Shown: positions 3,415 to 16,262 of the stretch, piece after piece
Numbering within the stretch: the first letter of the stretch is position 1
How the letters are laid out: every line of letters begins with the position of its first letter
Origin: Octopus sinensis
Lineage: Eukaryota
Direction of reading: 5' to 3'
Length of the DNA stretch: 17,134 nucleotides
Assembly (NCBI RefSeq): GCF_006345805.1
Contig: NW_021824976.1
Location: 1 to 17,134, forward strand
Program-made: the position numbers and the translations under genes
Notes under the pieces: generated by a model
The model's database searches: none
The model's input: only the letters and a program-made list of their open reading frames with translations
Told to the model about the DNA's origin: nothing

Positions 3415-5831
3415 TAACTCTAACCTTAACCCAAACCCTAACGTTGGCAAGTGACAACATAAATATATTCAAAATCAACCCTACGTTGGCAAGTGACAAA
3501 TAAATATTCAAAATCTAACCCTAACGTTGGCAAGTGACAACTAAATATTCAAAATCTAACCCTAACCCTAACGTTGCGAGTAGTGACAACATAAATATTC
3601 AAAATCTAACCTTAACCCTAACGTTGGCAAGTGACAACATAAATATTCAAAATCTAACCCTAACCCTAACGTTGGCAAGTGACAACATAAATATTCAAAA
3701 TCTAACCCTAACCCTAACGTTGGCAAGTGACAACATAAATATTCAAAATCTAACCCTAACGTTGGCAAGTGACAACATAAATATTCAAAATCTAACCCTA
3801 ACCCTAACGTTGGCAAGTGACAACATAAATATTCAAAATCTAACCTTAACCCTAACGTTGGCAAGTGACAACATAAATATTCAAAATCTAACCCTAACGT
3901 TGGCAAGTGACAACATAAATATTCAAAATCTACCTAACCCTAACGTTGGCAAGTGACAACATAAATATTCAAAATCTAACCCTAACGTTGGCAAGTGACA
4001 ACATAAATATTCAAAATCTAACCCTAACGTTGGCAAGTGACAACATAAATATATTCAAAATCTAACCCTAACGTTGGCAAGTGACAACATAAATATTCAA
4101 AATCTAACCCTAACCCTAACGTTGGCAAGTGACAACATAAATATTCAAAATCTAACCCTAACCCTAACGTTGGCAAGTGACAACATAAATATATTCAAAA
4201 TCTAACCCTAACGTTGGCAAGTGACAACATAAATATTCAAAATCTAACCCTAACCCTAACGTTGGCAAGTGACAACATAAATATTCAAAATCTAACCCTA
4301 ACCCTAACGTTGGCAAGTGACAACATAAATATTCAAAATCTAACCCTAACGTTGGCAAGTGACAACATAAATATTCAAAATCTAACCCTAACCCTAACGT
4401 TGGCAAGTGACAACATAAATATATTCAAAATCTAACCCTAACGTTGGCAAGTGACAACATAAATATTCAAAATCTAACCCTAACGTTGGCAAGTGACAAC
4501 ATAAATATTCAAAATCTAACCCTAACGTTGGCAAGTGACAACATAAATATTCAAAATCTAACCCTAACGTTGGCAAGTGACAACATAAATATTCAAAATC
4601 TAACCCTAACGTTGGCAAGTGACAACATAAATATTCAAAATCTAACCCTAACCCTAACGTTGGCAAGTGACAACATAAATATTCAAAATCTAACCCTAAC
4701 GTTGGCAAGTGACAACATAAATATTCAAAATCTAACCCTAACGTTGGCAAGTGACAACATAAATATTCAAAATCTAACCCTAACGTTGGCAAGTGACAAC
4801 ATAAATATTCAAAATCTAACCCTAACGTTGGCAAGTGACCAACAAAATATTCAAAATCTAACCCTAACCCTAACGTTGGCAAGTGACAACATAAATATTC
4901 AAAATCTAACCTTAACCCTAACGTTGGCAAGTGACAACATAAATATTCAAAATCTAACCCTAACCCTAACGTTGGCAAGTGACAACATAAATATTCAAAA
5001 TAAACCCAAACCCTAACGTTGGCAAGTGACAACATAAATATATTCAAAATCTAACCCTAACGTTGGCAAGTGACAACATAAATATTCAAAATCTAACCCT
5101 AACCCTAACGTTGGCAAGTGACAACATAAATATTCAAAATCTAACCCTAACCCTAACGTTGGCAAGTGACAACATAAATATTCAAAATCTAACCCTAACG
5201 TTGGCAAGTGACAACATAAATATTCAAAATCTAACCTTAACCCTAACGTTGGCAAGTGACAACATAAATATTCAAAATCTAACCCTAACCCTAACGTTGG
5301 CAAGTGACAACATAAATATTCAAAATCTAACCCTAACGTTGGCAAGTGACAACATAAATATTCAAAATCTACCCTAACGTTGGCAAGTGACAACATAAAT
5401 ATATTCAAAATCTAACCCTAACGTTGGCAAGTGACAACATAAATATTCAAAATCTAACCCTAACCCTAACGTTGGCAAGTGACAACATAAATATATTCAA
5501 AATCTAACCTAACGTTGGCAAGTGACAACATAAATATTCAAAATCTAAAAACCCTAACGTTGGCAAGTGACAACATAAATATATTCAAAATCTAACCCTA
5601 ACGTTGGCAAGTGACAACATAAATATTCAAAATAACCCTAACGTTGGCAAGTGACAACATAATATTCAAAATCTAACCCTAACGTTGGCAAGTGACAACA
5701 TAAATATTCAAAATCTAACCCTAACGTTGGCAAGTGAACATAATATATTCAAAATCTAACCCTAACCCTAACGTTGGCAAGTGACAACATAAATATTCAA
5801 AATCTAACCCAAACCCTAACGTAACCCTAAC
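3415..5831 (+). repeat. Telomere-like minisatellite, 42/48-bp unit, 53 copies
   Basis: Unit AACGTTGGCAAGTGACAACATAAATATTCAAAATC(TAACCC)1-2T; 53 copies counted from 3441 to 5771. It is bordered by degenerate TAACCC runs (3415-3441, 5806-5831). The minus strand reads TTAGGG. Confidence 0.97.
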
Positions 5832-6232: not shown

Positions 6233-6784
6233 TACGTAGGATGTGGCCAGAAAGAAACTTTAAAGAAGGATAAGAAAAGAGCCAGTAAACGGTATTGTAA
6301 GTACGGATGCATTGGGTAGAGTATTATACCGTGCATCCGAATAATTTTGAATGTTATTTTGTTAAATTACTTTTGCACAAAATTCGAGGGCCAGAATTAT
6401 TTACTGATCTCCGGGCTGTCAATTGTGTACTCTGCAAAACATACAGAGAAGCCTGTTTTAAATTAGGTCTTTTAGATGATGACCACCACTGGAATCAGAC
6501 TTTAACAGAAGCCGCGATTGCAGATTCTCCATCGCGACTAAGGTATTTATATACTTTGATGCTAGCCCATTGTAGGTTAGAAAATCCTAAGTAATTGTGG
6601 GAAGGTCATCGAGAAAGCATGTGCGAAGATATATTAAGAGAGAAGAATAGATCAAGTTTTGATGAAGAGATTTTCAACATTTGATTAATCATGATAGACA
6701 GATTGTTAATATCTGTCGTAGGCAAGAGTGTAAGTGAATTTGGTTTTAAAAATCAGCGATATTCATAATATAAATACTTTAGAT
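6233..6784 (+). pseudogene. Host Helitron RepHel fragment 3
   Basis: DALGRV(frameshift)YTVHPNNFECYFVKLLLHKIRGP..TYREACFKLGLLDDDHHWNQTLTEA..NPK*LW. Confidence 0.92.
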
Positions 6785-7477: not shown

Positions 7478-7504
7478 CTAATAAATATTATTACAAAAAA
7501 TAAC
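7478..7504 (-). other. Predicted 27-nt GT-AG intron
   Basis: GTTATTTTTTGTAATAATATTTATTAG ends in an in-frame TAG. Removal gives QKFG|VEKLTDSD and the downstream HLKMLKDDMKIRFEDL. Confidence 0.7.
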
Positions 7505-7711
7505 CCCAAATTTTTGTAGATTTGGAAAATTAATAAAAATCTTTTTCTTAATATTGTTTTCATAAAGTTGTAATTTTTCAATAAAAGGCATAATAATTCC
7601 TTTTACATTTATTAAATTGATATTGTTTCCTTGCAAGCTAATATTTACTGGTTGATTTTATAAAAAATATCAGCTAGATAAGCTATATCAGCTTTCAATA
7701 AAATCAACTTA

Positions 7712-7735
7712 CTAAAATGATTAAGGAATAATTAC
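7712..7735 (-). other. Predicted 24-nt GT-AG intron
   Basis: GTAATTATTCCTTAATCATTTTAG contains an in-frame TAA. Removal gives QRIFS KLILLKADIAYLADIF. Confidence 0.72.
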
Positions 7736-9095
7736 CTAAAAATTCTCTGCTCATGTAACTGACAAAATTCTAAGATTGAATCATACATTCAAAAAATCGA
7801 CACAAACAGTTTCCTTTTGAAAGCCATCTAACATGGGTATGCAAAAGAAGTCGTCATAATGCTCATCGTTTTGTTCACAAATATGTCGAAATATTCTCGA
7901 ATTCAATGGGTGCATTTTAATACGATTTATTGCACATATGACAACATTTAGTGATTCATTCAGCCTCTCACTTAAATTTTTCGCAGCTAAATGCTGTCTG
8001 TGAATGACGCAATGGATTGTAAAATATTCGGTACTTTTTCCTTCATATATGCCAAAAACCCACGATGAACTCCAACCATCGCAGGTGCCCCATCTGTTGA
8101 ACAAGCAAAAAATTGCTAAGGGGTATTTCATGTTTCAAAAAATATTGTTCAACAGTTTTGAAAATTGTTAATCCTCTTGTATCGAGTTCAAGGTGTTCAG
8201 AAAATAAAAATTCTTCTTGAATTACATCATTTTGATTAATATAACGTACGTAAACTAATAAAAGTGCCAACACTATCGTTGAATGTCGATTCATCAATCT
8301 GAATTGAAAATTTTGTTGTTCTTAAAAATGCACATAGGGTTTCTTCGATATCAAATGCCATTCATCAATTCTGGAAGAAACAGAACTATTACTCAAAGGA
8401 ATTGATGAAATTATTTTTCAGAATCACAATCAACCATTGAATTTAACACTTCTTTGATAGCTGGTAATATTAATGACTCTCCAATAGTATGAGGTTTTCC
8501 TGATTTCGCTATCAATTGCGATATTTTGTATGATGCTAATAGGCCTTTTTCAAGCATCTTCGAAATTTTTTGTAAATAGTTGATTAATCATAAGACGATT
8601 TTCATAATTATTATTTCAGATTAGAAAAATAATTGATATCCGCATCAAGTTTGTCAGGATGACAAATCTTAAGATGATTTAGCATTCTTGAGGCTTCATT
8701 CCTTCATTTGTAAAGACCTTTTTACACATAAGACACATTGGAAGTGAATTGTTATGGTCGTAGGGTATCACTCCAAACTTTAGGTATTCATCCGAATATA
8801 TACGTCGTTTTACTTTTTATCAGACATCTATTAAAAATAATTAAAATATTTATTAAAAAGTTCTAAAATATTAAATACAATTAACAAATATTTATAAATA
8901 TTATCAGTGAATAATTTTTTTACGTACACACAGACAATTTGAATTTAGAATTAATAGAAAAGCACGTGATAATGATTTACAAAACTAATAAAATATTTAT
9001 AATAATTAAAAAAAATTAAAATTCCAGCGCCCCCTAATATGTTCCAGCGCCCCAGGGGGGCGCCAGCGCCCCCGTTAAGAATCACTGCTTTAGAT

Positions 9096-9237: not shown

Positions 9238-10501
9238 CAGTGTTCCCTCTAAGCTGCGCGCGTGCGCGGCCGCGCAGCAGTTTGCACCTTGCTGCGCAGC
9301 GAAATTTTTTCTGCGCAGTAGAAAGTATATATATTAAAATTGAAATATTACTCCGGACTGTTTATACTGTTTTCAGTCGATCAAGTATAAAAAAGCTGCA
9401 TTTCAGGACCTGGCTAATGTTGTTGTTGAAGATGTCGTTTCATTTAAGCCACTAATGAAGTGAGATGGATGTCTCGGCATTTTGCTGTTAAAGCTTTGAT
9501 AAAAAAAACTACACATTTTAATGAATATTTCAAGAAACAGGTTGAAGATTGATAATGATCCGATTGCAAAATATTGCTTAAAACAACTTCAAAATCCTCT
9601 TATTCATGTTGCTTTAAGTCTTAAATGAAATTTTGGCTGAATTAGCAGATTTGTGCACCGTTTTCCAAAGAAGCTGTATATCGACCATAGAAGCTGTACA
9701 GTTTACCAGAGCAAAAATTTCGAAGCTGAAATCTCAATATTTGGATGGAAATGAAATTACTGGAGTGACAGTGTGAAGATGTTGTTATCAACAACTGGTT
9801 ATGGAGATACAAATACAGATGAAATCCTATGCTTTATCGAGCATGTTTATCTGCATTTACAAGAAAGATTTCCAGCTGACGAATTAAGAGAATGGGTAGC
9901 ATTTGACACTCAAGCAATTCAAATCACACAAACTTGAATTTGGAAAAGAGGAGATAATAAATTAGCGAAAAAATATGAAAATTTACTCTCTTCAGAAGTC
10001 CCACTCATAAAACTGCAGTCGGAATATACAGATCTCAAGTTTATTTTAAAAGAAAAACTGCACTCTGGTGCTTTGAAAACATTTGAAGATGTAATTTACT
10101 ATATACTAGCGGAGAAAAAATTTTCAGCCACTGCAACATTTGTGGATATTTGTGGCACATTTCAAGCGTCGAGTGCTGATGCTGAACGTGGATTTAGTTT
10201 GATGAACTGTATCAAAACTAAACTACGTAATAGACTTGAGATTGACCATTTGGAGATGATCATGCGAATCAAGTTCTATTTAACAAGTGGGAATACAGTG
10301 GATCTTGATCGAGTATACAAATTTTGGATACAAAATAAAAACAGAAGAGAATATCCAATTGACTAGACCTATTTTTTAACCATTGGTTTTTTAATTGTAA
10401 AATTTCCCCCCCCAAAAATTTTTTGCACACGTCACTTTATAACGCTGCACAATGCAATGTGCCCAGCGCGCATAGCTACCACTCGCTTAGAGGGAACACT
10501 G
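9238..10501 (+). mobile_element. Internally deleted hAT transposon with a ZNF862-like transposase
   Basis: Perfect 17-bp TIRs CAGTGTTCCCTCTAAGC / GCTTAGAGGGAACACTG. 8-bp TSD GCACCGGG at 9230-9237 and 10502-10509. Confidence 0.96.
9337..10366 (+). pseudogene. hAT transposase C-terminal half including the dimerisation domain
   Basis: IEILLRTVYTVFSRS, EVRWMSRHFAVKAL, DPIAKYCLKQL, TFQASSADAERGFSLMNCIKTKLRNRL. Several frameshifts; the N-terminal zinc finger and first catalytic aspartates are missing. Confidence 0.88.
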
Positions 10502-12097: not shown

Positions 12098-12665
12098 CAG
12101 CGATACAAATAAAAAACGGAACAGCCAATTTCTCAATTTCTTTCTATATAATGCTTAATTTCTTTTAATAAAAAATCGAATTTCAAGCTATAATCTTAAC
12201 TTTTGCCTTTTATAAAAATCCAAACGTCAAAGATTTTAATATGTATCTAAACCAAATTTTTTTCAAACAAAATAAAAAAGAGAACAATGGTAGTTCAAAA
12301 TTTAGTATGACCCCCCTGAGCATTAATTGCGTCTAAAATTCTGTTCCGCATTATTCCAACAAGGGATGTCGCATATTCTATTGAAAGATCATTCCAAATA
12401 TTTTTTAATTCCTCAAATAGGTCACTCTTTTTTTTAAATTCAGTCCCTTTTATTTTATGTTTCATGAAGGCCCACACCTGCTCGATTGGATTCAAATCGG
12501 GACTTTGAGGAGGCCATTGTAATAACTCAATTCGGTGTTCATTAAAAAAATCTTTAGCCACCTTGCATGTGTGCTTTGGATCATTATCTTGCTGATAAAT
12601 TGGAGACCGGATTCCGGTTTTCTCCAAAAAAGGCAACAAATAGTCCGCTAAGATACTTACATACA
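12098..12665 (-). mobile_element. Truncated Tc1 (DD34E) element: 3' arm and transposase C-terminus only
   Basis: TA (12096-97) is followed by a CAGCGATACAAAT.. end. Minus-strand ORF 12295-12666: QQDNDPKH..WPPQSPDLNPIEQVW..GGHTKF*, with 34 residues between D and E. No second TIR. Confidence 0.92.
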
Positions 12666-12762
12666 TGTGGGATGCTCAAGGGTACGCAGAAGAGAAAATT
12701 TATTCGTATATGCCCAGGAAGGACGGACGACAAACATCGTTTATCAACAGGTATTAAAATAG
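12666..12762 (+). pseudogene. Host Helitron helicase C-terminus
   Basis: [31 protein letters not shown]. The 3' UTR matches 2680-2750 up to 12831. Confidence 0.92.
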
Positions 12763-13338
12763 TGTTGCGTCAAACCAGGTCGTTTTATATATTTACATAA
12801 ACTTAGTTGATTGATGAAACATGCCCTACGCTAAAATTACATCATGAAAATATGATGTTTAACAAGAAAATAGATAGAATATATCATCAATCCGAAATGC
12901 TAACAATATATCATCAATAGGGCAACCAATTGCAATTTTTTGCAATTAAATATAATTTAATTAAAATTCGATAAATAATAAAGTAATGAATAGACATTAA
13001 TTTTAATTATATTTTTATTCGATTTAAATTGCAATTTTTTGCAATTTTTGTAGTCATTTTACAATTTTTTGCAATTTTTTTAAATTAAAAAAAAATTTTT
13101 TTATTAAAAAATAATATAATTATAAGTAAAAGATTATTAAAACGTGTTTTAGTTGTTTGTTGTAATGGGTAAAAGGACAGTGTCACAGAAAATTTCATTT
13201 TATGCAAAGAAATTCCCCGAGTTGTTATTGACAGTGAAGGGAATTTATTTTGCTCCAATTGCTCAACTGTTGTACGGTGTGACACAAAATTTTTTGTTGA
13301 TGCGCACCGTTCTTCAAAAAAACATTTAAAAGCACACA

Positions 13339-13364
13339 GTATTTCTTTGAATTTAAATTTATAG
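13339..13364 (+). other. Predicted 26-nt GT-AG intron
   Basis: GTATTTCTTTGAATTTAAATTTATAG; removal deletes an in-frame TAG and shifts into the frame of ORF 13457 (AHK WTNSS). Confidence 0.8.
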
Positions 13365-13611
13365 AATGGACAAATTCATCTCAGAGTTCACAAACATTTC
13401 TTTCGGCGATAACGGATACTCGAAAGGATTGGGGGATCAAAGTAACACAAGCGTTTTTGGAGGCAAACATACCAATTTATAAAATCAGACATCCTTCCCT
13501 CATACGGCTTTTTGAGCAGGAAACATATCCTTTGCCATCTGAATCATCTTGCAGGTTAAATGTTAAAGAAATATCAAAATATAAAATTAATACCATTCAG
13601 ACTCATTTACT

Positions 13612-13637
13612 GTTGTTTTTTTTAAGTTATTCAATAG
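13612..13637 (+). other. Predicted 26-nt GT-AG intron
   Basis: GTTGTTTTTTTTAAGTTATTCAATAG; removal puts the catalytic FFVCDEAQ motif in frame. Confidence 0.78.
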
Positions 13638-13878
13638 TGGGGAATGTGTTTTTTTTGTTTGTGATGAAGCCCAATCAATGGAACTCGTTTTTTAATTACT
13701 TTGATTGGGAAAATCTCCACTCCAAAAAATCTTCATTTAGTATCGTGTACCAATCTATATTATCCGCCTACTACTTCAACAATTTGTGTTGAGGTGGACA
13801 AAGTAATAAAGAAATTTTCTATTGAACGTGAAAATTTTATATTATTCGTTACAGATGGGGCGAGATATATGACCAGTG

Positions 13879-13904
13879 GTATATATAAATAAATTTAATT
13901 TTAG
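13879..13904 (+). other. Predicted 26-nt GT-AG intron
   Basis: GTATATATAAATAAATTTAATTTTAG; removal joins ORF 13701 to ORF 13916 as TDGARYMTSAGASMKLIY. Confidence 0.85.
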
Positions 13905-14215
13905 CTGGGGCATCAATGAAATTGATATACCAAAATCTTTTCCACGTGACTTGCGTGTCACATTTATTGCACAACTGTGCTCTAAAGATTAAGGCATACT
14001 TCGCAGATGTTGATGAATTGATTTCGTCTATAAAGGCTGCCACAGTCAAAAACAAGAGACGTTTGGAGATGTTTTCACGAATCGGAAATCCACCCGAAGT
14101 TGTGGTTACAAGATGGGGAAGCTGGCTAAAAGCAGCAAAATATTACTCCCAGAATCTTCCAGAAATTATTAAAATCGTATCTGAATTTGAAGGAGATGGA
14201 GTTTTAATACAAAAT

Positions 14216-14238
14216 GTTTTAGTTTTTAATTATTTTAG
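14216..14238 (+). other. Predicted 23-nt GT-AG intron
   Basis: GTTTTAGTTTTTAATTATTTTAG; removal joins ORF 13916 to ORF 14251 (IQNAKKSVNNP). An alternative donor at 14222 (17 nt) is also in frame. Confidence 0.75.
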
Positions 14239-15102
14239 GCAAAAAAATCAGTGAATAATCCTACGTTGTTTCCAAGCTTAACCCAAATCAGTTCAAATTA
14301 TTTGGGATTAATTGAAATGATTTCAAATACTGAATTGCTTGATTACTCCATTGCAACAGCTTATGGTGATCTAAACACCCTAGACTTTACATCAGATCCA
14401 TGCGACATAAAATCCTATATATCAAAAAAGCTTGAGAAATCAGGAATACTAAGTATTCTTGAATTCTCAAATAAGAATCTATCGCCAGAAGTTTATTCAC
14501 ATCTCAGAAAATGTAGCGCAAGTTCAGCATCTATCGAAAGGGCAATATCTCTTTTGACGAAAATTCTTAGTAAAGAGAGGAACTTTAAACCTGAAAATGT
14601 TCAGGAATATTTGATTTCCTATTACAATAAATAATTTCGTTAATTTTTTGCATAATGTAATGTTTACAATTAAAAAAAATTATTTTTGCAATTTTTTACA
14701 ATTTTTAAAATTCATTTTTGCAATTTTTTTTATTAAAAAGTGCAATTTTTTGGTTGCCCTAATCATCAACAATTAATTTTATTCTTTTGAAGCATACTGA
14801 TGTACATGTTACTAAAATATCCAGGAAACATGGCAAAATGACCTTTCTAGTACAGGAGTGGAAGAGCGCAGTGAGTTTTTGAGTCGAAAATAATATCATT
14901 AATTTTGTGATCTGACTTATGCCATTTTTATGCTTTTTAATAAAAAGTTAATAAATATTTTTCAATCTTGAGTTTTAATAATTCATAATTTCATTTTTTA
15001 AAAATTTACAAAAAAATATTTTAAAACTCTTGTACAGTAAAACCTCTCGAATCCGCCAAATTTGGGATCTGGGAAATTACGGCGGATTCGAGAGGTTTTA
15101 CT

Positions 15103-16262
15103 ATTATTATTAGCACTGTCATAGGAACATAATGTAATTTAAACTAATTAAGTTCCCACATGTGCCACATATGAGACTATCTTTTCGGTCATAATTTTCC
15201 ATGATGTGCGGTTGTATGCTATACTCCTGAGAGTATCTAGGTCGTCTCCATTTTTCAGTTGTCTTTTAACGCGTTGTAGTTCTTTTGAGATTACAATAGG
15301 TAATGTATTTCGTGGGCGTCCTCGGGACGCAGATCTTTCGTCCTTTGCGTAATATGATTCCATTGCCCAGTTAGCATAAACATCCTGGTCGAGTCTTAGA
15401 ATGTGGCCCAATAGGCGCCAACGTGCTTCGGTAATGTCCACACTGACGGGTCTGCTGTTGCAGATATTGTATAGGGTGGAGTTCTTGATTTTCTTTGGCC
15501 AGTTGATGCCAATAAGAATTCTTAACTGTCTTCTATGGAATGCATCAAGAGATTTTGATTCAGACTCAGATATTCCCCATGTTCCTCCGTTGTACAAAAG
15601 TATGGGTTTAATAAAAGCATTGTATAATTTGGCACGTAAGGCCGTTCCAACCTCGCGGTTTCGTAGCCAAGTGGTCCGCAGTTTGTTAAGTGCAACAGTC
15701 GATAGCATCTTTCTCCTCATAATGTCTTCACTATCTCCTAAAAGAGTTCCAACTTTTTTCGAGTTTCGCCATTTTTCGTCTGTTCTATTTGCCTCCCGGT
15801 TGATTGTTACATATTCGGTTTTTTCTATGTTCACTTTTAAGAACCATTTTTCCAGTGCCTGGGGAGCAATGTTCAGCAGTTCTTCGAGTGTCGACTTATC
15901 ATGAGACAAAAAGTCTACATCGTCGGCATATATCACTTCAGTTATTGAAGTGGTCTTCACTAGTTTTCTCAGATCTCTTAGTGCCGCTTCAAGATAGACA
16001 ATGAATAGTACAGGTGATATTGAATCACCTTGGGGCGTTCCAATGCTTGTTTTGAAAGATCTTGATTGTACGGGTCCGATCTTCACCGTTAACTCGGTGT
16101 CTATAAGTAGTGCTCGAACCATTCTGATCGAGTCATTGTCAAGAATAGTTTTGAGGATCTCCATTAGCTTGTCTCTGCGGATTGTATCAAATGCCCTGCT
16201 CATATCAATGCCCAATATTGTGGTCGCCATTTTAAATTTCTGAGATATGGCACAGATCCATC
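15103..16262 (-). mobile_element. 5'-truncated RTE-clade non-LTR retrotransposon
   Basis: 12-bp TSD AGAGGTTTTACT at 15091-15102 and 16263-16274. Short (TAA)n tail at ~15103-15112. The RT ORF begins mid-domain. Confidence 0.93.
15148..16230 (-). CDS. Reverse transcriptase, RTE clade, uninterrupted but 5'-truncated (no endonuclease)
   Basis: LGIDMSRAFDTI, GTPQGDSISPVLF, YADD, LKVNIEKT, LYNAFIKPILLY, RWRLLGHILR, RGRPR. The frame stays open to the insertion boundary at ~16260. Confidence 0.93.
   Translation of the reverse strand: MATTILGIDMSRAFDTIRRDKLMEILKTILDNDSIRMVRALLIDTELTVKIGPVQSRSFKTSIGTPQGDSISPVLFIVYLEAALRDLRKLVKTTSITEVIYADDVDFLSHDKSTLEELLNIAPQALEKWFLKVNIEKTEYVTINREANRTDEKWRNSKKVGTLLGDSEDIMRRKMLSTVALNKLRTTWLRNREVGTALRAKLYNAFIKPILLYNGGTWGISESESKSLDAFHRRQLRILIGINWPKKIKNSTLYNICNSRPVSVDITEARWRLLGHILRLDQDVYANWAMESYYAKDERSASRGRPRNTLPIVISKELQRVKRQLKNGDDLDTLRSIAYNRTSWKIMTEKIVSYVAHVGT

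Follow-up and report, generated by a model that had tools for sequence, protein, structure and literature searches.

hAT transposons are recognized by target-site duplications of 8 bp and by ends that begin TAGGG. Transposase genes that contain introns are familiar, and include those of the Drosophila P element, whose third intron is retained in a tissue-specific manner, maize Ac, and medaka Tol2. Herein, we describe a hAT element found in contig VCDQ01009439.1 of the Octopus sinensis assembly GCA_006345805.1. The whole contig, 17,134 nt in length, was analyzed and is hereafter called the window. The transposase gene of this element is divided by four segments of only 23 to 26 nt that have the characteristics of miniature spliceosomal introns. 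As with the P element, Ac, and Tol2, a transposase would be made from this gene only after splicing, which would make host splicing a precondition for mobility. In contrast to those examples, the putative introns are 2 to 10 times shorter, and none of the four may be retained if transposase is to be made.

The closest described elements are the hAT-19 or CGGBP-like hATs (Yellan et al. 2021, PMC8097297) and a group of transposases of ~457 aa that are of the DUF659 type. In the literature, the term “CGGBP1-like” denotes the hAT-19 subclass, for which the CGGBP1 domain model combines zf-BED with a Hermes-type DNA-binding domain (PMC8097297). The element in the window resembles these groups in its 8-bp duplication, in its TAGGG(CA) ends, and in the order of its protein parts, wherein a CxxC..H..H finger is followed by a conserved DNA-binding region, the DDE residues, the motifs CxxH and RW, and, at the C terminus, a putative dimerization region with ER..S. 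It differs from them because the relatives checked at the DNA level are encoded by a continuous open reading frame (ORF), whereas this one appears to be broken by four introns of 23-26 nt, and because several residues that are invariant in the group are changed.

The segments themselves are most similar to the introns of dicyemid cellular genes (Ogino et al. 2010; PMC6736024; PMC6543705), which are likewise bounded by GT..AG, 23-29 nt long, AT-rich, and of weak consensus (GTW.., ..TTTAG). Unlike the introns of cellular genes, those described here reside within a mobile element at places where its relatives have none, and they are apparently new insertions. The miniature introns of ciliates and the 26-28-bp internal eliminated sequences of Paramecium are also comparable in length and AT-richness, but the eliminated sequences have TA..TA ends rather than GT..AG ends.

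Evidence for miniature introns in a hAT transposase gene

A sequence-only reading of the window had proposed that a transposase gene is split by four GT..TAG segments, and that removal of these segments joins a zinc finger, the DDE motifs, and CxxH in one frame with only two 1-nt deletions remaining. Comparison with related proteins upholds this arrangement, both for the positions of the segments and for the protein motifs, all of which are present. The hAT transposon spans 12920-14761 (1,842 bp), and the region first reported, 13165-14634, is its coding part. The order of features within this part is as follows.

13165..13338, + strand: exon 1, with the start ATG at 13165, the CxxC..H..H zinc finger, and a 1-nt deletion at ~13216-13226
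13339-13364, + strand: putative intron 1, GTATTTCTTTGAATTTAAATTTATAG, 26 nt, GT..TAG, phase 1
13365..13611, + strand: exon 2, DNA-binding or N-terminal region (..AFLEANIPIYK..LPSESSCR..), approximately residues 70-140 of relatives
13612-13637, + strand: putative intron 2, GTTGTTTTTTTTAAGTTATTCAATAG, 26 nt, GT..TAG, phase 2
13638..13878, + strand: exon 3, with catalytic aspartates 1 and 2 (VCDEA, FVTDGARYM) and a 1-nt deletion at ~13669-13677
13879-13904, + strand: putative intron 3, GTATATATAAATAAATTTAATTTTAG, 26 nt, GT..TAG, phase 1
13905..14215, + strand: exon 4, insertion domain (motifs CxxH and TRW)
14216-14238, + strand: putative intron 4, GTTTTAGTTTTTAATTATTTTAG, 23 nt, GT..TAG, phase 0
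14239..14634, + strand: exon 5, putative C-terminal hAT dimerization region that includes the catalytic E (SIERAIS), ending in the stop TAA at 14632-14634

None of the four lengths is divisible by three, all four segments end in TAG, and the reading passes from one ORF fragment to the next across each of them. The lengths of 26, 26, 26, and 23 nt fall within the range of ~20-30 nt that is characteristic of miniature introns. The GC content of the segments is 8-19% (~14%) compared to 32-38% for the exons. The joining of ORFs alone is weak evidence for introns because chaining with arbitrary dinucleotides threads the region about equally well. Indeed, both in a scan of flanking open frames and with an ORF-chaining program, control boundary dinucleotides performed about as well as GT..AG. 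Because such scans do not discriminate, the test of the introns rests on homology.

The exon pieces were kept separate and added as fragments (MAFFT --addfragments) to 37 aligned full-length relatives. Junctions 2, 3, and 4 are gapless relative to these proteins, with a single column taken by the split codon, which at junction 3 is the conserved A of YMxxAG. Removal of the segments at these three junctions therefore restores homologous coding sequence. Junction 1 is located in a linker of variable length, where homology cannot set the length of intron 1. Removal of this segment restores the frame, and it is the sole GT..AG choice among the frame-restoring deletions tried within ±12 nt. Alignment by tblastn brackets intron 3 between residue 221 of a relative, which ends at 13877, and residue 222, which begins at 13904, and brackets intron 4 between residue 325, which ends at 14215, and residue 326, which begins at 14239. 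Against the relative P0002, exon 4 stops at alignment column 323 and exon 5 opens at column 324.

For each junction, all deletions within ±12 nt that restore the frame were also scored with a family profile, for which short junction peptides were scored locally. The deletion lengths favored by the profile are 26 nt for intron 2, 26 nt for intron 3, and 23 nt for intron 4, and the GT..AG placements at these three sites are within ~1-3 bits of the best score. Other GT..AG choices (23, 29, and 17 nt) are 5-10 bits lower. Specifically, the 26-nt deletion is favored over a 23-nt deletion at intron 2, the 29-nt alternative at intron 3 scores 8.5 bits lower, and the 17-nt alternative at intron 4 scores 10 bits lower.

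GT..AG ends are expected for 0.2%-0.4% of placements in this sequence, and they were observed at four of four. The occurrence of four such pairs in one narrow length class is far beyond chance. Furthermore, the segments look like the introns of linked cellular genes described below, with GTW at the 5′ end, a T-rich composition, and often a TTAAT shortly before the terminal (T)TTAG. The sequence and homology data support the assignment of the four segments as miniature spliceosomal introns in a hAT-type transposase gene. A search for a spliced form that used one relative together with exons 4 and 5 as separate rows recovered distant relatives only, and a search of protein collections found no short ORF fragments resembling exon 5.

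The ends of the element were located on either side of the coding part and include the following features.

12912..12919, no strand: left target-site duplication, ATCATCAA, 8 bp, the same 8-mer being directly outside both inverted ends
12920..12931, + strand: left terminal inverted repeat, TAGGGCAACCAA, 12/12 complementary to 14750-14761
12931..13079, + strand: 5′ subterminal region with four TGCAATTTTT repeats
14687..14750, + strand: 3′ subterminal region with three TGCAATTTTT repeats
14750..14761, - strand: right terminal inverted repeat, TTGGTTGCCCTA, 12/12 complementary to the left end
14762..14769, no strand: right target-site duplication, ATCATCAA, 8 bp, a perfect copy of 12912-12919

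As is typical of hAT elements, there is an 8-bp target-site duplication on both flanks (ATCATCAA), and the short inverted ends start with YARNG (TAGGGCAACCAA / TTGGTTGCCCTA). Because both the ends and the duplication are perfect, they point to a recent insertion of the element at 12920-14761. The TGCAATTTTT motif occurs seven times in the 17-kb window, and all seven copies reside within the two element ends. These subterminal repeats are likely to be binding sites for the transposase. At the 3′ end of the gene, the sequence AATAAA is present at 14626-14631, directly 5′ of the stop TAA at 14632-14634. A scan with Rfam models of the window and of the linked contig VCDQ01005136.1 gave no match.

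The predicted transposase and its two deletions

The exons sum to 1,369 nt, and the addition of 2 nt yields 457 codons, which is the usual size for the family. At each of the two 1-nt deletions, in exons 1 and 3, the reading shifts from frame 3 to frame 2. The pieces of exon 1 match residues 1-60 of relatives, and the PE..LFC spacing agrees when one base is allowed. Likewise, the stretch DEAQ|INGTRFLITLIG in exon 3 equals the length found in relatives when one base is allowed. The CxxC..H..H zinc finger and residues D148, D212, E423, C236, H239, R289, and W290 are all kept, such that the DDE residues are accompanied by the inserted CxxH/RW domain expected of a hAT transposase. When the exon fragments were aligned to 26 relatives, 61 of the 71 columns with at least 90% conservation were found to be retained.

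In Pfam searches conducted with the separate exon pieces, the only match was a weak one between exon 5 and the hAT dimerization model Dimer_Tnp_hAT (PF05699; 15.7 bits, E = 0.014), which is under the 21.4-bit cut-off. Full-length relatives score 16-19 bits against the same model, and exon 5 aligns with them end to end. A sequence search of the PDB with exon 4 found nothing. With regard to the finger, positions 30-95 of the family profile give a weak match to a U1-C or matrin-type zinc finger (PDB 3cw1_L, E = 0.025) and not to the BED finger model.

The copy as assembled is unable to make a transposase. Most likely, it is now non-autonomous and can be mobilized in trans. It is conceivable, though we regard it as rather unlikely, that the two deletions are errors of long-read assembly and that the copy is an intact autonomous element. 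Both deletions adjoin short homopolymers, a contaminant would be expected to have low coverage and poorer polishing, and the perfect ends, the target duplication, and the many conserved columns would all suit an intact copy. On the other side, two copies of a long interspersed nuclear element (LINE), one of which is in the window, are 3 substitutions and no indels apart, which argues weakly against rampant indel error. Similarly, a NOL9 gene on the contig that carries the second LINE copy reads through 524 codons without a frameshift once its introns are removed.

Relatives without introns

A phmmer search with exon 4 yielded 1,501 representatives, the best with E = 4.6e-39. Many of these proteins are 455-460 aa long, and exon 4 matches them at residues ~221-323. 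The relatives carry Pfam DUF659 and weak hAT dimerization matches, and some of their clusters comprise hundreds of members located on megabase contigs, a pattern expected for a transposon. The element in the window is most likely a member of this widespread hAT group, which is characterized by ~457-aa transposases and DUF659. Full-length relatives of ~440-480 aa (n = 40) were obtained from metagenome-style (prokaryote-style) gene calls. Two of these, P0001 and P0002, were checked at the DNA level, and each is a single uninterrupted ORF on a contig of ~2.1 kb. A complete intronless element of 2,078 bp (L004) was also recovered. Its inverted ends are TAGGGCATTTCAA, and it has in common with the left end described here the start TAGGGCA.

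The sequence-only reading had allowed that the transposon might either have gained its introns or have shrunk older ones. Because the relatives are ~457 aa long and the two that were checked at the DNA level are uninterrupted, gain in this lineage is favored over shrinkage, although it is not proven. The contrary view, that this hAT lineage had its introns ancestrally and that they were shortened in a dicyemid, has some appeal. Dicyemid cellular introns are shortened introns at conserved positions according to the statement in PMC6543705 that cites Ogino et al. (2010), and the sample of relatives is biased to uninterrupted ORFs given that metagenome gene callers cannot join exons. Opposing this view are the 40 full-length proteins themselves and the observation that none of the fragmentary matches has exon-shaped ends, many of the fragments instead beginning at the internal Met of YMxxAG. 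We therefore consider an ancestral origin of the introns to be unlikely.

The genome that carries the element

Aside from the element, the window includes remnants of a Helitron helicase, two more hATs, a Tc1/mariner element, and the LINE mentioned above. The LINE, at 15099-16262, shares 99.74% identity with a copy that lies close to the end of contig VCDQ01005136.1 (L001, 299 kb). RefSeq lists its ORF as “uncharacterized protein LOC115230848 [Octopus sinensis]”. The named relatives of this ORF with at least 49% identity all bear the label O. sinensis, and none is from O. vulgaris or O. bimaculoides.

Compact cellular genes are located only a few kilobases from the LINE copy on VCDQ01005136.1. 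Among them is NOL9, which occupies 1.7 kb and contains six GT..AG segments of 29, 26, 27, 27, 23, and 27 nt. Without these six segments the gene becomes one 524-aa ORF that has no frameshift. Their removal also extends the match to Pfam CLP1_P from profile positions 1-52 (51.7 bits) to positions 1-140 (82.4 bits), and the match to NOL9_C from positions 50-90 (21.6 bits) to positions 3-90 (32.4 bits). On a second large contig, VCDQ01007225.1 (L008, 360 kb), a SMARCAL1-like gene has introns of 28 and 27 nt inside one contiguous HARP match. Introns of the same class are thus found in cellular genes of the same assembly, and the link between the window and this genome is indirect. TAA, TAG, and TGA all act as stops in the ORFs examined here.

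These cellular genes independently support the proposal, made in the sequence-only reading, that the host has a spliceosome for miniature introns. Its warning that naive ORF calling would mislabel the transposase gene was also borne out, as exact look-ups in the assembly index found no gene record for the exon ORFs. The NOL9 gene on the linked contig is likewise absent from the called genes, and an exact look-up of its exon 1 in the assembly index returned no record. Elsewhere on VCDQ01005136.1, two ORFs of TELO2 (Telomere_reg-2) overlap in different frames at ~14600-14720 (- strand). No tiny GT..AG intron joining the two ORFs was found at this overlap, and the break may reflect either a non-canonical intron or an error in the local assembly.

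On the basis of these sequences, assembly GCA_006345805.1 seems to include long contigs that derive from an animal with tiny introns and standard stop codons. Among animals, introns of <30 bp are reported only for myxobolid myxozoans and dicyemids (PMC13644364). The median intron length of a dicyemid (Dicyema sp.) is 27 bp (Zverkov et al. 2019, PMC6543705), and Dicyema japonicum has been collected from the kidneys of O. sinensis (Lu et al. 2019, PMC6736024). The splice-site motifs of D. japonicum are reported to be weak (PMC13644364), and the introns described here fit this pattern. Because of the intron class, the association with the host, and this literature, the window is most likely dicyemid DNA that is present as a contaminant of the octopus assembly.

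Far less probable is the idea that the contig is genuine octopus DNA into which the hAT element and the LINE were transferred horizontally from a dicyemid parasite. In that case, the element could never have been active in its new host, because an octopus spliceosome would be unable to remove introns of 23-26 nt. In favor of this idea, the contig was deposited and annotated in RefSeq as O. sinensis, the parasite lives in close contact with its host (PMC6736024), horizontal movement has been suspected for elements of the hAT-19 type (PMC8097297), and no cellular gene in the window anchors it to one genome or the other. However, large contigs of the same assembly are of the compact-gene, tiny-intron type, which makes contamination demonstrable and more economical. 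Two unrelated elements tie the window to the tiny-intron genome, and under horizontal transfer both would have had to move. Moreover, the perfect target duplication implies transposition in a transposase-competent cell, and relatives of the LINE from O. vulgaris or O. bimaculoides are missing among the named ones.

The weakest explanation is that the four segments are chance insertions in a decaying pseudogene, which is improbable in the extreme: even though the copy carries two frameshifts and its ORF can be threaded with other arbitrary boundary dinucleotides, all four segments have GT..AG ends that are rare per placement, their lengths of 23-26 nt match the class found in linked cellular genes, their GC content of 8-19% contrasts with ~35% for the exons, and their removal is gapless relative to relatives (junctions 2-4) and leaves a coding sequence that is well preserved. 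A reading of the segments as ciliate introns or eliminated sequences is out because of the standard stops, the GT..AG ends, and the animal-type content of genes and transposons.

A proposed history of the element

We consider it probable that the window holds a complete hAT element with four spliceosomal introns and two deletions on a dicyemid contaminant contig, and that the introns were gained after the element had entered this lineage. According to this model, short AT-rich insertions that followed entry into the dicyemids would have become introns, all four of which would be removed from the primary transcript by the tiny-intron spliceosome of the host. The spliced product would be a transposase of ~456 aa with an N-terminal finger, an RNase-H-like DDE core into which a CxxH/RW domain is inserted, and a hAT dimerization C-terminus. 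The N-terminal finger region may bind the subterminal TGCAATTTTT repeats. The protein would form dimers by way of its C-terminus and would move the element by cut and paste, leaving behind 8-bp duplications. The present copy would be expected to move only with transposase supplied by another copy.

A more specific proposal is that the four introns were born de novo as AT-rich insertions of ~23-26 nt in the mobile element after its invasion of dicyemids. We offer this proposal tentatively, as a possibility that falls short of an even chance. That regulated splicing might gate transposition, as it does for the P element, is pure speculation.

Several observations weigh against the proposed history. 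Residues that are otherwise invariant in the family are altered, as in the change of VERSFS to IERAIS, and homology cannot fix junction 1. No near-identical, already-spliced protein was seen among 5.8 billion protein clusters, wherein the best matches are 64% (exon 4) and 51% (exon 5). Copies without the two frameshifts, which the sequence-only reading had thought worth seeking, did not emerge: no second copy of the element was seen that would tell mutation from assembly error as the source of the frameshifts. The gene calls from which the relatives were drawn are prokaryote-style and cannot report split genes, and this biases the collection toward intronless copies. The window contains transposon remnants and satellites only and lacks a cellular gene, and the ties that assign it to a tiny-intron organism are the shared LINE and the introns of the hAT element itself.

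Implications

The tiny introns of dicyemids, hAT elements, and transposase genes with introns were each known separately before this analysis. A search of the literature library at hand found no paper on intron-bearing dicyemid transposons or on dicyemid contigs in an octopus assembly. The wider interest of the locus lies in the apparent gain of four introns by a transposon family that is otherwise intronless, and in the presence of contaminant contigs in a RefSeq assembly.

With regard to the first of these, the element provides a clean case, in which a transposase gene carries the smallest class of animal intron and has intronless relatives elsewhere. Transposons of this kind could be used as natural reporters for the mode and rate of tiny-intron origin in dicyemids. 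If the introns were indeed born de novo, then introns would still be arising in an animal that was thought only to shrink them at conserved positions, and the copies of the element together with its sister families would represent a dated series of intron births. The element would also be “locked” to hosts that splice tiny introns, and would not be expressed after a jump into octopus.

With regard to the second, tiny-intron contigs seen in the O. sinensis RefSeq assembly comprise those of 299 kb and 360 kb, which carry cellular genes, plus the 17-kb window. A contaminant of this type bears on claims about gene families, transposons, and horizontal transfer that are made from the assembly. Conversely, long-read dicyemid sequence may be recoverable from octopus data. 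Genes with introns of 23-29 nt escape standard gene finders and ORF callers.

Other candidate introns and repeats

Additional hAT remnants are located in the window at 7478-8297 (- strand) and 10073-10366 (+ strand). Within the former, a candidate 27-nt GT..AG intron at 7478-7504 (- strand) joins two open stretches of ~50 codons. Two more candidates reside on VCDQ01005136.1, one of 26 nt at 12350-12375 (- strand) in a Merlin/IS1595-like transposase, and one of 27 nt at 6368-6394 (- strand) in another hAT. None of these three candidates was confirmed by Pfam. If they are genuine, tiny introns may be common in the DNA transposons of this genome.

Two satellites are also present in the window. 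The first, at 136-1310, comprises 12.4 copies of a 95-bp unit with 95% identity. The second, at 3434-5814, comprises ~53 units of 42-48 bp that have a telomere-like AACCCTAAC(CCTAA) core adjoining GTTGGCAAGTGACAACATAAATATTCAAAAT.

Fragments corresponding to the C terminus of a Helitron-type Pif1 helicase are found at 2251-2674 and 12665-12757. The two have similar endings (the second reads ..GCSRVRRRENLFVYA..), and the first is frameshifted. The C-terminal half of a Tc1/mariner transposase at 12295-12666 (- strand; Pfam DDE_3, E = 2e-13) is truncated beside the second Helitron fragment. Finally, a perfect 22-nt inverted repeat with a 22-nt loop at 15037-15102 (AGTAAAACCTCTCGAATCCGCC ... GGCGGATTCGAGAGGTTTTACT) is positioned at the edge of the LINE segment that the window has in common with VCDQ01005136.1.

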